Shown: piece after piece, positions 506 through 9,299 of the stretch
Layout: the number at the start of each line of letters is the position of its first letter
Position numbering within the stretch: the stretch's first letter is position 1
NCBI RefSeq assembly: GCF_000143415.4
Contig: NW_003314604.1
Span: forward strand, 1 to 9,473
Length of the DNA stretch: 9,473 bases
Source: Selaginella moellendorffii
Lineage: Eukaryota > Plantae > Lycopodiophyta
Direction: 5' to 3'
Program-made: the position numbers and the translations under genes
The notes under the pieces: model-generated
What the model saw: only the letters and a program-made list of their open reading frames with translations
What the model was told of the DNA's origin: nothing
Databases searched by the model: none

Positions 506-681
506 GCCACTGTGCCTTGGCACGTGTCTCAAGCACATTGAGCGTCTCCTAGCCCACGTTATTCACGCAAGGCCTGTCTAATAGCATAAATACATGTCTT
601 CCTCCACACTATAATACATACCACTCTCCTGTTGTTGTTATCTTTGCAGTAGCACGGTTTAATCCTTGCGAAGCAAATCCC

Positions 682-978
682 ATGGACAAGGCAGCAAAGA
701 TCACTCTTGTTCTCACACTCACTGTTGCATTTGCATTTGCCTCACTCGAGTCCACCAATGCTGTTGAGATAGCTCCCAACACAAAGTTTGTGCCGGCTTC
801 TTCTCTTCTCTCATACTTCAGGAGCCTGAAAGAGCTGGAGTGCATGCCGCACTCTCAATGCTGCCCCGACTCCAAGCCCTGCCCATCAGAGGACCAGGAG
901 TGTAAGATCTGTGCCCACACTTATCCTGCACTGTGCTTCTGCACGGACAAACCTGAGCTTAACAAGCTGATGCTGTAA
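682..978 (+). CDS. Secreted 8-Cys peptide, Bowman-Birk inhibitor-like, copy 1 (loop CAHTYPALC)
   Basis: 98-aa intronless ORF: signal peptide (about aa 1-27, ending TNA), spacer, then C-x5-CC-x5-C-x6-C-x2-C-x7-C-x-C. The segment ICAHTYPALCFCTD resembles the soybean BBI second loop ICALSYPAQCFCVD. The ORF is intact in all three copies and has a TATA-like element upstream. Confidence 0.85.
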   Translation: MDKAAKITLVLTLTVAFAFASLESTNAVEIAPNTKFVPASSLLSYFRSLKELECMPHSQCCPDSKPCPSEDQECKICAHTYPALCFCTDKPELNKLML

Positions 979-1928: not shown

Positions 1929-3510
<1,582 letters not shown>

Positions 3511-3533
3511 CCTCACCGCCACCGCTGCCTGTA

Positions 3534-3613
3534 AAACCCTAGACGACATAGATCCAAAACCCTAGACCCAGACCGTACAGACACGTCACCATACCGTACT
3601 AACACGTCACCAT
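3534..3613 (-). promoter_or_regulatory. Putative PRMT10 promoter/5' elements: two telo-boxes and a duplicated ACACGTCACCAT
   Basis: AAACCCTA at 3534-3541 and 3557-3564; 12-nt direct repeat at 3581-3592 and 3602-3613. Confidence 0.45.
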
Positions 3614-3874
3614 TAAGACATTATCGTTCAAACAGGTCAACTCTCAAACAAGCTTGAGAGTTTTATTATTATTATTATCAGTAGCGAAGTGCGTGGCTAT
3701 CAAAGAAACAGCCACTAATGCACCAATTGCAAAGCGGAAAATACAGAAGACGGGCGACTTATGAAGAATGGAGGAACAAATGTCTTTATGTGTTAAAACT
3801 AAGTGGTTGTGGGACACATAAATGCTTAGCACTGAGTATAAAGAAACATGAGATAAGTTATGCATACCTCCAGA

Positions 3875-4171
3875 TTACAGCATCAGCTTGTTAAGCCCAG
3901 ATTTGTCCGTGCAGAAGCACAGTGCAGGATAAATTTTGGCACAGATCTTACACTCCTGGTCCTCTGATGGGCAGGGCTTGGAGTCGGGGCAGCATTGAGA
4001 GTGCGGCATGCACTCCAGCTCTTTCAGGCTCCTGAAGTATGAGAGAAGAGAAGAAGCCGGCACAAACTTTGTGTTGGGAGCTATCTCAACAGCATTGGTG
4101 GACTCGAGTGAGGCAAATGCAAATGCAACAGTGAGTGTGAGAACAAGGGTGATCTTTGCTGCCTTGTCCAT
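3875..4171 (-). CDS. Secreted BBI-like peptide, copy 2 (loop CAKIYPALC, putative P1 Lys)
   Basis: 297-nt ORF with 6 nt differences from copy 1. The start is placed at 4171 by homology to copies 1 and 3 and by the TATATA at 4237-4242. Confidence 0.85.
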   Translation of the reverse strand: MDKAAKITLVLTLTVAFAFASLESTNAVEIAPNTKFVPASSLLSYFRSLKELECMPHSQCCPDSKPCPSEDQECKICAKIYPALCFCTDKSGLNKLML

Positions 4172-4236
4172 GGGATTTACTTCGCAAGGATTAAACCGTG
4201 CTGCTGCAAGGATAACAACAACAGGAGAGTGGTATG

Positions 4237-4370
4237 TATATAGAGTGGAGGAAGACATGTATTTATACTATTAGACAGGCCTTGCATGAATAACGTGGGC
4301 TAGTTGACGTGCAACTTGAGACACGTGCCAAGGCACAGTGGCGGATAAGATACAGTCATATGCCCACGTG
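4237..4370 (-). promoter_or_regulatory. Putative BBI-like gene promoter: TATA plus ACGT-core boxes
   Basis: TATATA 4237-4242, AACGTG 4292-4297, TGACGT 4305-4310, CACGTG 4322-4327 and 4365-4370. The TATA-like element, AACGTG and the proximal G-box recur in copy 1 (G-box 521-526) and copy 3. Confidence 0.5.
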
Positions 4371-5036
4371 GACTTAGCTGCTTCAGGGGTATTCCCAGGA
4401 TGGGCATCTGGCATCGGCAAAAGGGATCGTTGATGCAATGAATGAGGGGACATTGTCTCTTGGAATGAGATGCTTAGTGCATATTCCCATCCCCAGAATA
4501 TAGAATTTTTTGACAGCACACTTAGAGAGATGCCACAGGTGGACTTGGTCTCGTACGTGGACGATTCTGCTCACAGCATATGCCCAGGCTGGGAATCTCC
4601 ATGACCAGATGACCTGGTATCTTGTATCACGAGCAAGGCACTAACGTTCCACGTGGGGTATTGTGTTAAACATGACACACCCTCGCCTGGTTGACGACAA
4701 GGAAGCTGTTGGAATCAATGCCGTATCGCTACGGAGTGACGTGGAATGCCATGCTTGCCATCCTTAACTACAAATCATAATGAATTTGATGCCCACCAGA
4801 GACACAGCATATGCCCATTCGCGGCATCCAAGGCTCTCCTTTACATTCTCAATTTGGAGGGTGTTAGTCAGGACTAAGTAACATTTATGTGAGCATTCTT
4901 ACAGCATTGAGCCACTCCGGCCTGGTTCAATGGAGTTTGATTATTTTGTGTTTTCAGACAGGTAGACCTGGACTTGTGAATGAACCTTTTTATAGCATGC
5001 TAGGATCAGGGTAAGGTGGCGGTGGCGGCATTCCTG
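4340..5036 (+). pseudogene. Degenerate PLS/E-class pentatricopeptide repeat (PPR) gene remnant
   Basis: Broken frames read DIVSWNEMLSAYS, EMPQVDLVS/WTILLTAYAQAGNL, KLLESMPYRYGVTWNAMLA and LEGVSQD*VTF/SILTALSHSGLV, typical plant S/L2/S2 PPR motifs with stops and frameshifts. Boundaries are approximate. Confidence 0.85.
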
Positions 5037-5289
5037 ATATCCGAGTCAAGTGATTAGCGACCCGGTTGTAAGGGATCGATTGCCCAATGAAACGGTCCAG
5101 GACATTGCTGCTGTGAACTCGCGATTTTCGTTTACTCTTTTTGGAAGCGACAGGCTCTGCTGGCTGGTGTTCACGCTTTCATGATAAAATCCCGCTCTAT
5201 CCCTCTCTCTCTTTCTTTTTGCTAACTCTACTAGTGTGGCTTTCCAGGGGAATTCGTCGAATTCAGCAGAGAAGGAAATCGAGTTGACA
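5037..5289 (+). pseudogene. Inverted PRMT10 fragment (exon 5, intron 5, start of exon 6)
   Basis: Reads PSQVISDPVV, IDCPNETVQDIAAVNSRFSFTLFGSDRLC, the intron end ACTAGTGTGGCTTTCCAG, then GNSSNSAEKEIELT. It is a diverged reverse complement of about 2206-2492. Confidence 0.88.
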
Positions 5290-5294
5290 CTAAG

Positions 5295-5613
5295 GCATGA
5301 TTGCAGATTAAACTATTGTGGAGCACTCATATGCGATGCTAAGAAGCTCTTTGACGCTGCGCCGGTCGAAAGCATTGTGTTGTGGACTTCCGCTGCTTCA
5401 GGGATATTCCCAGGATGCACACAGAGCCCCAAGACTCTCCTTTACATTCAGGGTGTTAGTCGAACATTTATGAGCATTCTTAGAGAACGTTGAGCCTTTG
5501 AAAGAGGTCTGTCAATGCTTTGGATCGATGGAGTTCGATTATGTTGTGGTTTCTAAGGAAGATCACAGTGTATGATTGATGATCTTGGTAAAGCTGGACT
5601 TCTGAACGAGGCT
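5295..5613 (+). pseudogene. Second PPR remnant (C-terminal L2/S2/E-like part)
   Basis: Reads DAKKLFDAAPVESIVLWT, GVSRTFMSIL, FGSMEFDYVVVSKEDH and MIDDLGKAGLLNEA. Paralogous to 4820-5000. Confidence 0.8.
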
Positions 5614-5731: not shown

Positions 5732-6096
5732 ATGGGTGCTGCGAGCACAAAGGTCCAGATCACCAATGGCACTGACTATATTGTTGTTCGTCGTGACAGG
5801 TTCAGGATGATCTATGGTGTGAAGCTGGGAGAAGTTTGAGGATCAAGCTTACCTCTCGAACTTACTTTCGAGTTGCTGTCATGGTGGCCCGTGAAATTGA
5901 TGAAATTCCCACTGGTTTGCATCTGGATGTCAGGGACTTGGAGCCCCAGGCAGCGTTCTATATCAGTGAAGAAAATGGCACTTTCTATTTGACAGATGCC
6001 AACGACAATACATTCAAGTCAAGTCGGATGCTGCCAGATGAAAAGCTTGTTGTCAAGTGCTACTTAGTCCAAAAGGGAAGTAGTAACAAAAACTAA
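5732..6096 (+). pseudogene. Frameshifted gene for an unknown ~120-aa protein starting MGAASTK
   Basis: The ATG at 5732 reads MGAASTKVQITNGTDYIVVRRDRFRMIYGVKLGEV*. A 1-nt shift near 5820-5835 joins it to LRIKLTSRTYFRVAVM...KLVVKCYLVQKGSSNKN*. The paralog starting at 1727 keeps MIYG...LRIKL in one frame. Confidence 0.55.
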
Positions 6097-6180
6097 ACAG
6101 AGCGAGCGAGCTTTCCAACGTCTTTACATAAGAGCTGCAAATCCATGTATCTTTGCTTGATATGAGTTGAGTTGAGTGGA

Positions 6181-7210
<1,030 letters not shown>

Positions 7211-7532
7211 AGCCCTAGACCCAGACCGTGCAGACACGTCACAGTTAAGACTGACACATCGTTGTAGTTGTCAACTCTCAAACAAGCTTGAGAGTTTTTT
7301 TATTATTACCAGTAGTGAATGACACAGTACATGTCGTGGCTATCAAAGAAATAACCACTACTAGATCATTTGCAAAGCGGAAAATGCCCAAAATCACATA
7401 GTTTTAGCACATAAAAACATTTATTACTCCATTCTTCAGGTCAGAAGGTGTGCAGCAAGTCGCCCATCTTCTAGGACACACAAATGATTAGCACTGAGTA
7501 TAAAGAAACACGAATTAAGTCATACCTCCAGA

Positions 7533-7829
7533 TTACAGCATCAGCTTGTTAAGCTCAGGTTTGTCCGTGCAGAAGCACAGTGCAGGATAAGTGTGGGCAC
7601 AGATCTTACACTCCTGGTCCTCTGATGGGCAGGGCTTGGAGTCGGGGCAGCATTGAGAGTGCGGCATGCACTCCAGCTCTTTCAGGCTCCTGAAGTATGA
7701 GAGAAGAGAAGAAGCTGGCACAAACTTTGTGTTGGGAGCTATCTCAACAGCATTGGTGGACTCGAGTGAGGCAAATGAAATTGCAACTATGAGTGTGAGA
7801 ACAAAAGTGATCTTTGCTGCCTTCTCCAT
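7533..7829 (-). CDS. Secreted BBI-like peptide, copy 3 (loop CAHTYPALC)
   Basis: 297-nt ORF. The protein is identical to copy 1 except for 5 substitutions in the signal peptide (D2E, L9F, T14I, F17I, A18S). Confidence 0.85.
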   Translation of the reverse strand: MEKAAKITFVLTLIVAISFASLESTNAVEIAPNTKFVPASSLLSYFRSLKELECMPHSQCCPDSKPCPSEDQECKICAHTYPALCFCTDKPELNKLML

Positions 7830-7999
7830 GGGATTTGCTACGCAGGGACTAAACTGTGCTGCTGCAAAGATAGCTACAGAGAGTGGTATGTATATAGAGT
7901 GGAGGAAGACATGTATTTATGCTATTAGACAGGCCTTGCATGAATAACGTGGGCTAGGAGACGTGCAATGTACTTGAGACACGTGCCAAGGCACAGTGG

Positions 8000-8700
8000 C
8001 GGAAAGATACAGTCATATGCCCACGTGGACTTAGCTGCTTCAGGGGTATTCCCAGGATGGGCATCTGGCATTGGCAAAAGGGATCGTTGATGCAATGAAT
8101 GAGAGTGTCTCTTGGAATGAGATGCTTAGAGCATATTCCCATCCCCAGAATATAGAATTTTGGCAGCACACTTAGAGAGATGCCACAGGAGGACTTGGTC
8201 TCGTTCGTGGACGATTCTGCTCACAGCATATGCCCAGGATGGGAATCTCCATGACCAGATGACCTGGTATCTTGTACCACGAGCAAGGCACTAACGTTCC
8301 ATGTGGGGTATTGTGTCAAACATGACACACCCTCGCCTGGTTGACGACAAGGAAGCTGTTGGAATCGATGCCGTATCGCTACGGAGTGACGTGGAATGTC
8401 ATGCTTGCCATCCTTAACTACAAATCATAATGAATTTGATGCCCACCAGAGACACAGCATATGCCCATTCGCGGCATCCAAGGCTCTCCTTTACATTCTC
8501 AATTTGGAGGGTGTTAGTCAGGACTAAGTAACATTTATGTGAGCATTCTTACAGCATTGAGCCACTCCGGCCTGGTTCAATGGAGTTTGATTATTTTGTG
8601 TTTTCAGACATGATTTACGTTCTTGGTAGACCTGGACTTGTGAATGAACCTTTTTATAGCATGCTAGGATCAGGGTAAGGTGGCGGTGGCGGCATTCCTG
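8000..8700 (+). pseudogene. PPR remnant, duplicate of 4340-5036
   Basis: Nearly identical to 4340-5036 and shares most disabling lesions. Confidence 0.85.
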
Positions 8701-8943
8701 ATATCCGAGTCAAGTGATTAGCGACCTGGTTGTAAGAGATCGATTGCCCAATGAAACGGTCCAGGACATTGCTGCTGTGAATTCGCGATTTTCGTTTACT
8801 CTTTTTGGAAGCGACAGGCTCTGCTGGCTGGTGTTCACGCTTTCATGATAAAATCCTGCTCTATCCCTCTCTCTTTCTTTTCGCTAACTCTACTAGTGTG
8901 GCTTTCCTCGAATCCAGCAGAGAAGGAAATCGAGTTGACACCA
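8701..8943 (+). pseudogene. Inverted PRMT10 exon 5-6 fragment, duplicate of 5037-5289
   Basis: Same sequence as 5037-5289, with the exon 6 acceptor deleted. Confidence 0.88.
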
Positions 8944-9299
8944 ATTGTGGAGCACGCATATGCCCGAAATGGACATGAAGCGATGCTAAGAAGCTCCTTG
9001 ACGCTGCGCCGGTCGAAAGCATTGTGTTGTGGACTTCGCTGCTTCAGGGATATTCCCAGGATGCACACAGAGCCCCAAGACTCTCCTTTACATTCTCAAT
9101 TGGAGGGTGTTAGTCGAACATTTATGAGCATTCTTACAGAGCGTTGAGCCACTCAGGTCATTTGAAAGAGGCCTGTCAATACTTTGGATCGATGGAGTTG
9201 GTTTCCAAGGAAGATCACAGTGGTAAAGCTGGACTTGTGAACGAGGCCAAGGACCTGTTTGATAGCATCGCCGTACGATCCGGGTACGGCGGCATTCCT
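8944..9299 (+). pseudogene. PPR remnant, duplicate of 5295-5613
   Basis: Reads AYARNGH, QLEGVSRTFMSILT, LSHSGHLKEACQYFGSME and GKAGLVNEAKDLFDS. Confidence 0.8.

Follow-up and report, generated by a model that had tools for sequence, protein, structure and literature searches.

Can one head of a Bowman-Birk inhibitor (BBI) stand alone as a gene? This question is raised by an open reading frame (ORF) at positions 682..978 (+) of a scaffold from Selaginella moellendorffii (NW_003314604.1 in assembly GCF_000143415.4), whose whole length of 9,473 nucleotides is called the window below. BBIs are a textbook inhibitor family (MEROPS I12) that is thought to descend by internal duplication from a single-headed ancestor. 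An initial annotation, made from the letters alone, had described in this ORF a compact scaffold of eight cysteines with a single recognisable Bowman-Birk loop and had assumed a non-seed plant as its probable source, which agrees with the origin of the scaffold. Our results show that the gene is present in three intact copies and that its product shares homology with one head of the S. moellendorffii BBIs (SmBBIs). The reading that we favour, with a probability of roughly 0.55, is that an intronless gene which encodes a secreted, single-headed Bowman-Birk-like protein has recently been duplicated, leaving three copies in the window.

Copy 1 (c1) is an intronless ATG-to-TAA ORF of 98 codons plus stop on the forward strand. 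Copy 2 (c2; 3875..4171) and copy 3 (c3; 7533..7829) lie on the reverse strand and also have 98 codons plus stop. Protein identity among the three is 95–96%, and c1, which has no private changes, is identical to the three-copy consensus. In c1, residues 1–20 (682..741, +) make up a predicted signal peptide, as judged from hydropathy and from the −3/−1 rule. More specifically, the n-region is charged (K3, K6), the h-region I7–A20 consists of 14 uncharged hydrophobic residues, and the means over nine residues on the Kyte-Doolittle scale reach 2.56. There are two candidate signal-peptidase sites, one between AFA and S after residue 20 and the other between TNA and V after residue 27, in which case the signal would end at base 762. 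The Cys-free spacer that follows (residues 21–53, 742..840, +) is 33 residues long with the first cut and 26 with the second; the spacer of about 26 residues proposed initially holds for the second cut only. Alignment detects no similarity between the spacers of c1 and of the SmBBIs. The core C54–C87 (841..942, +) comprises exactly 34 residues with the spacing C-x5-CC-x5-C-x6-C-x2-C-x7-C-x-C. A C-terminal tail of 11 residues, TDKPELNKLML (943..975, +), ends at the stop codon, which stands 11 residues past the last Cys in all three copies; c2 has SG in place of the PE of c1 and c3. MAFFT pairs LNKLML of the tail with the SmBBI C-terminal KLVLVSE, although the match is weak. Thus the ORF translation confirms the predicted order of signal peptide, 34-residue core with eight Cys, and the tail KPELNKLML. 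It is possible that the spacer is a propeptide, and the role of the tail as a C-terminal vacuolar signal is a conjecture. A six-frame scan of the window for C-x(1,2)-C-x7-C-x-C finds the three genes only, with one loop in each and no second loop or decayed remnant of one.

What is the relationship of this protein to known inhibitors? An exhaustive HMMER (phmmer) search of 1.84 billion proteins (cluster representatives) returned three proteins: the scaffold's own model (P0001), P0002 with an E-value of 1.7e-5, and P0003 with 6.6e-5. P0002 is S. moellendorffii Bowman-Birk inhibitor 5 (BBI5; ARE30275.1, XP_024541989.1), which is named so in both UniProt and GenBank, and the alignment runs from residues 50–91 of the window protein to residues 39–79 of BBI5. 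The 90%-identity cluster of BBI5 contains also BBI1, BBI2, BBI3 and three genome models, all of them 124–125 residues long. BBI5 passes the Pfam model Bowman-Birk_leg (PF00228) with 30.3 bits as compared to the cut-off of 20.4 bits, and its gene is intronless, as are the three genes of the window. Papers that cite James et al. (2017, Plant Cell 29:461; ARE30271–ARE30275) describe five Selaginella BBIs, all double-headed, of which BBI3 is reported to inhibit trypsin. The statement of the initial annotation that divergent BBI-like proteins had been reported from this species is in line with these names.

Specifically, BLASTP aligns the core with head 1 of BBI5 over 39 residues, of which 51% are identical (E 3e-11); every one of the eight Cys finds its counterpart, and the alignment needs a single one-residue gap. 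Comparison of the window family with the SmBBI family by hhalign gives a probability of 97.3% and an E-value of 1.8e-11, both families being small. Since Cys-rich proteins can inflate similarity scores, a shuffle test was run in which Cys were held fixed and the non-Cys residues were shuffled in 200,000 rounds. The core and head 1 are identical at 9 of 25 non-Cys positions, the shuffled mean is 2.2, and one of the 200,000 shuffles reached nine. The core and head 2 agree at 4 of 24 non-Cys positions, which is not significant, whereas the two heads agree with each other at 10 of 24. When the core strings are compared by eye, the identities between the window protein and head 1 are found mostly in the N-terminal half, P-x-SQCCP-x-SK-x-CP, and those between head 1 and head 2 in the C-terminal half, CPKGK-x-C-x-V-C-T-x-S-x-PP-x-C. 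At the nucleotide level, a blastn comparison of the BBI5 locus with the gene and its flanking DNA detects similarity confined to the Cys core (54% identity) and none in the untranslated regions (UTRs) or the promoter. It is therefore very probable, as far as sequence comparison can tell, that the protein is a homologue of an SmBBI head and that the single-headed gene is real; the initial call of a gene with eight Cys at 682–978 is upheld by the intact ORF in three copies and by a homology that is significant across the whole library.

The initial annotation had left two options, membership in the reported Selaginella set or an undescribed subfamily of mini-inhibitors. The comparison with the published set covered BBI1, BBI2, BBI3 and BBI5. 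These proteins are double-headed and about 46–51% identical to the core, about 51% being the upper limit, so that the first option falls and the second stands. The window protein has one head with eight Cys, the family 14 Cys in legumes and 16 in the Selaginella BBIs. A word-index search with the 98-residue protein finds nothing similar among proteins of 54–171 residues in a collection of 5.8 billion clusters, and with BBI5 as the query it finds only the cluster of BBI5 itself. Our literature search found no description of a natural stand-alone single head homologous to BBI genes. Thus the double-headed SmBBI family is known, and the single-headed BBI-like form with eight Cys is previously undescribed. 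We call the window protein 'BBI-like' rather than a canonical member, because it does not reach the Pfam BBI model on its own; of the Pfam support that had been looked for, only that of its relative BBI5 is found.

Some features of the SmBBIs themselves deserve mention. These proteins (P0002, P0004–P0009; L001 10001–10375) have two times eight Cys as compared to 14 Cys in legumes. Their loops follow CT(K/R)SxPPxC, with an exception in BBI1 and two genome models, where the loop of head 1 reads CMPSNPPLC and has Met-Pro in place of Thr-Lys/Arg. The exit of the loop in Selaginella head 1 (CFC) resembles that of the soybean second head, and the exit in head 2 (CRC) that of the soybean first head. 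This pattern hints at a swapped head order or at convergence.

The second part of the question is whether the loop is of the Bowman-Birk type. The register of the nine-residue loop C77–C85, CAHTYPALC (910..936, +), follows from its alignment with the loops of the SmBBIs and with the one in the second head of soybean BBI. In c1 this gives C77 as P3, A78 as P2, H79 as P1, T80 as P1′, Y81 as P2′, P82 as P3′, A83 as P4′, L84 as P5′ and C85 as P6′, with the P1 and P1′ codons at bases 916–921. Copies 1 and 3 have His at P1 and Thr at P1′, and c2, with the loop CAKIYPALC, has Lys and Ile, just as the initial annotation had noticed for P1′, where Ser is usual. Relative to the consensus CTP1SXPPXC given in PMC7760496, the C-x7-C frame and the P3′ Pro are kept, and P2 (Ala), P1′ (Thr/Ile) and P4′ (Ala) are changed. 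Thr or Ile at P1′ is absent from every other BBI that we compared. A search of the PDB with the 20-residue loop segment gave seven matches. Three of these are BBIs, namely soybean 1d6r/1k9b, soybean 1bbi/2bbi/5j4q and adzuki bean 1tab, and in every case it is the second head that aligns. Here KICAHTYPALCFCTD and CICALSYPAQCFCVD are identical at 10 of 15 positions, with E-values of 0.24–0.9 that are marginal when taken alone. The loop resembles best the second, chymotrypsin loop of soybean BBI. Because P2 Ala, P2′ Tyr, P4′ Ala and the CFC-x-D exit are shared with that loop, they do occur in a natural, active chymotrypsin loop, and the unusual features are limited to Thr/Ile at P1′ and His at P1. 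Loop-peptide studies of the Leatherbarrow laboratory reportedly showed P1′ Ser to be conserved but not strictly needed for inhibition, and the cis-Pro at P3′ to be the critical residue. Hypervariability of the reactive site is typical of canonical inhibitor families.

Has the gene been maintained by selection? Between the tandem units of the window about 3,050 bases can be aligned, with about 3.5% substitutions and 59 gap openings. In the coding sequence of 297 bases no pair of copies shows an indel, while 4.7–6.4 would be expected (P about 0.002–0.01); indels are excluded from the coding sequence. Nine residues have changed among the copies, none of them a Cys and none in residues 21–78. They affect the signal peptide, the P1/P1′ pair and the tail. 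All five amino-acid changes of c3 fall inside the signal peptide and are mostly conservative, and c2 differs only at the P1 and P1′ codons, where three nucleotides in a stretch of five bases have changed, and in two adjacent codons of the tail. The placement of the changes in c2 and c3 is suggestive, the numbers being small. Micro-conversion from an unseen paralogue would leave the same pattern.

Several observations weigh against our interpretation. Pfam assigns the three copies to no family even at E ≤ 10, and sequence search of the PDB with the full-length protein and with the 38-residue core gives no BBI match. Most of the others are what one would expect if the genes were neutral passengers, that is, if a once-functional single-headed BBI-like gene had been duplicated together with methyltransferase pseudogene fragments and its copies, unexpressed or decaying, were intact only through their youth. 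The 13 substitutions in the coding sequence are 10 nonsynonymous and 3 synonymous, which is the neutral expectation. Divergence of the coding sequence between c2 and c3 is 4.4%, no lower than the average of the surrounding repeat unit. A look-up of the exact products of the three copies in the assembly and Logan gene index gave no expression record. The scaffold of the genes is tiny and unplaced, and their neighbours on it are decayed copies of a methyltransferase, of which the adjacent copy B falls apart into several reading frames. The loop has lost the near-invariant Ser at P1′, the usual Thr at P2 and the Pro at P4′, and it has His at P1 in two of three copies. On the other hand, zero indels in 297 bases stand against a background of about one gap opening per 47–64 bases, none of the ORFs has acquired a stop codon, the 24 Cys codons are all preserved and residues 21–78 are unchanged. 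Moreover, with about 50% protein divergence from the SmBBIs and a core only 54% identical to theirs at the nucleotide level, the lineage still has its signal peptide, its reading frame and eight of eight Cys, and therefore long purifying selection must have acted until at least the recent past. We consider neutral passengers an unlikely account. That the gene is currently functional and expressed has, judging by its sequence, slightly better than even odds; the odds that the protein acts as a protease inhibitor are somewhat below even.

The departures of the loop from the inhibitory consensus at P2, P1′ and P4′ and the His at P1 would also suit a scaffold that is expressed and folded but has been repurposed, its loop serving as a recognition surface of an antimicrobial or membrane-active peptide or of a signalling ligand. 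The changes between copies on the exposed loop and tail fit such a role, as do weak matches of the loop segment in the PDB to the plant defensins 4uj0 and 1jkz (E 0.9–4.7). The defensin matches are, however, not significant and lose the Cys register, whereas the nine-residue frame and the P3′ Pro are retained, the match of 10 out of 15 to the active chymotrypsin loop of soybean BBI includes P2 Ala, P2′ Tyr and P4′ Ala, and c2 has the classical Lys at P1. We find a non-inhibitory role of this kind rather doubtful. An unrelated cysteine-rich fold, knottin-like or other, in which the likeness to BBIs would come from a convergent loop and a shared QCCP..PCP motif, is very improbable. P0003 does match QCCPDxxPCPS at an E-value similar to that of BBI5, profiles that include the Selaginella heads match spider double-knot toxins slightly better (E 0.14–0.2) than solved BBIs (E 2–7), and the model of the core, of middling confidence, matches nothing, BBIs included, by Foldseek against the PDB and by VIA-align wide. 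Yet the match to SmBBI head 1 spans all eight Cys in register with one gap and survives the Cys-fixed shuffle, P0003 does not keep the register of C74, C77, C85 and C87, the toxin matches are not significant, and the SmBBIs to which the core is related pass the Pfam BBI model and include the reported trypsin inhibitor BBI3. No confident match to a knottin, a defensin or another cysteine-rich fold, which would have removed the BBI assignment of the initial annotation, appeared in the PDB sequence, ESM Atlas and fold searches.

Structure prediction neither confirms nor contradicts the BBI fold. With the three-copy alignment AF2 gave an unusable model (pLDDT 52.5) with a low-confidence helix at residues 39–48. 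The core combined with the SmBBI alignment was modelled as a beta-hairpin of residues 72–78 and 84–89 whose tip is the loop (mean pLDDT 67.5). In the ESM Atlas the best scores for residues 50–98 were 0.78 and 0.75, the second being a cyclotide cluster, and both are below the informative range. As for P0003, it is an unnamed fragment of 370 residues from a JGI metagenome contig of 1,429 bp with no Pfam family, built of repeats C-x4-CC-P-(D/N)-G-x-PCPS and a C-terminal hydrophobic segment. Its common ground with the window protein is the QCCPDxxPCPS motif only (QCCPDSKPCPS in the window), and we treat it as a motif-level match.

If the window genes encode a secreted single-headed Bowman-Birk-like protein, as we think, then the following mechanism can be proposed. 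The eight Cys would form four disulfides inside the module, and the C77–C85 disulfide would close the nine-residue loop at the tip of the beta-hairpin. Residue 79 would be the P1 with which the loop docks, like a substrate, in the active site of a serine protease (the 'standard mechanism'). Copy 2, with Lys at P1, would be aimed at trypsin-like enzymes, and copies 1 and 3, with P1 His and P1′ Thr, may have a different, weaker or pH-dependent specificity.

Regarding the origin of the gene, a double-headed ancestor may have lost head 2, or head 1 alone may have been duplicated, followed by drift of the loop from CT(K/R)SxPPxC. As the N-terminal half is shared with head 1 and not with head 2, derivation from a head-1-type sequence after the heads had diverged is the simplest reading, and one of these two routes is most likely. 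A single-headed BBI ancestor is reported to have been postulated by Mello et al. (2003). That the module is a direct descendant of such an ancestor, with Selaginella keeping both the pre- and the post-duplication forms and the copies diversifying at P1/P1′ under selection, appears decidedly unlikely. With three unrooted lineages, about 25 variable sites and angiosperm heads built on another Cys frame, a rooted phylogeny of the heads would be untrustworthy. The blastn similarity to the BBI5 locus, restricted to the Cys core, gives no trace of where a head might have been deleted or inserted.

Each Selaginella head would then probably be a self-contained module with four disulfides, and structural and engineering work would have, in the module of the window, a minimal BBI scaffold of about 45 residues that is provided by nature. 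A single-headed relative in a lycophyte gives a handle on the order of events, head loss versus head gain. A further outcome is the correction of EFJ04383.1, a chimeric gene model. Should the genes be silent, what is left is a minor annotation fix only; the importance would rise considerably with a peptide that is detected in planta and proves to be a protease inhibitor, or with a wider sampling of lycophytes in which its root lies outside the two-headed genes.

This chimeric model is the only annotated one on the scaffold. EFJ04383.1 (SELMODRAFT_432465, UniProt D8TG34) is a 'hypothetical protein' of 269 residues, and our literature search found no mention of it under any of these three names. 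By tblastn it maps to c3, which is its 5′ part, with the downstream flank (7829–7425), and to three methyltransferase-like blocks on the reverse strand (7189–7112, 6890–6771 and 6492–6127). It appears to bypass the TAA of c3 by means of a GT that overlaps the stop codon. Because the downstream 'exon' on the c3 side is deleted in c2 and different in c1, EFJ04383.1 is a chimera of c3 and methyltransferase pseudo-exons, and the conserved reading is the ORF of 98 codons; an extension of the gene by read-through or splicing as in this model was rejected on the same grounds.

Extension in the upstream direction was dismissed as well. In c1 the extension is out of frame and there is an in-frame TAG at 649–651, the ORF list holds none for c3, and the only in-frame upstream ATG, that of c2 (position 4258), is not conserved in c1 and c3. 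The region 506..681 (+) upstream of c1 is common to all three copies and may contain the promoter and the 5′ UTR. TATA-like elements are found at 586–592 (present in all three copies) and 610–616. At 625–651 (+), 33 nucleotides 5′ of the ATG, all three copies have a pyrimidine tract with a TTGCAG end that resembles a splice acceptor. It may mark a 5′-UTR intron or be fortuitous; it cannot extend the ORF of c1, since the in-frame TAG comes after the tract.

The copies are embedded in repeats. A tandem direct repeat of about 3.66 kb, in which 2474–3742 matches 6181–7385 and 3812–5535 (unit A) matches 7474–9199 (unit B), carries c2 and c3, and c1 sits in a shorter inverted copy of 540–600 bp (506–1046/1106). 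The repeat also contains two copies of a protein-arginine-methyltransferase-like gene, at 2264–3549 (−) and 6127–7237 (−), with further parts at 1410–1727 (−) and 5836–6096 (+). Pfam, with which the ORF pieces were scanned one at a time and the exons unjoined, detects PrmA/Methyltransf_25 in 2959–3549 (−) and PRMT_C in 2267–2533 (−). Presumably the gene resembles plant PRMT10. Copy A has long exon-like ORFs, and copy B, in unit B, is a probable pseudogene with its sequence scattered over several frames. In the two tandem units, a piece that looks like the C-terminal part of the methyltransferase is in opposite orientations. Inside the methyltransferase-like region of both units there are GT/CA dinucleotide microsatellites (2931–3119 and 6626–6821, both −) of unequal length, which translate as CVCVCV runs.

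How does the window protein compare with known systems? It is closest to SmBBI1–5, which occur in the same species, are intronless, have a signal peptide followed by a Cys-free spacer as well as a hydrophobic C-terminal tail, and share the eight-Cys module with the loop frame C-x2-C-x7-C-x-C; with head 1 it shares in addition the P-x-SQCCP-x-SK-x-CP motif and the CFCT after the loop. In contrast to the two heads, 124 residues and 16 Cys of the SmBBIs, it has one head, 98 residues and eight Cys, and its core has one extra residue between C4 and C5. Its loop is CA(H/K)(T/I)YPALC instead of CT(K/R)SxPPxC or the CMPSNPPLC of some first heads, its signal peptide, spacer and UTRs show no detectable similarity to those of the SmBBIs, it stays below the Pfam BBI model, and its gene is not annotated as a separate one. 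With the second head of legume BBIs (soybean 1bbi/1d6r, adzuki 1tab) it has in common P2 Ala, P2′ Tyr, P3′ Pro, P4′ Ala and the CFC-x-D exit. Unlike the window protein, legume BBIs have 14 Cys, two intertwined subdomains and C-x-C before the loop, where the window has C-x2-C, and their second head has Ser at P1′ and Leu at P1 instead of Thr/Ile and His/Lys; no significant overall match extends beyond the segment of 15 residues.

Two further groups present one loop per protein. The 'single-headed' 8-kDa BBIs of cereals (monocots) likewise have one potentially functional inhibitory loop (PMC7995804), but they are full-size and their second loop has been inactivated through the loss of two Cys, whereas in the window protein the second head is physically absent and the Selaginella-type frame of eight Cys is kept. 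SFTI-1 and BBI-loop mimics, the sunflower PawS-derived peptides, resemble it in the minimal presentation of a single BBI-type loop. SFTI-1 is a head-to-tail cyclic peptide of 14 residues with one disulfide that resides within a seed albumin precursor (PMC11253845). While SFTI-1 is not homologous to BBI genes, the window protein is the product of a stand-alone gene that is homologous to BBI heads.

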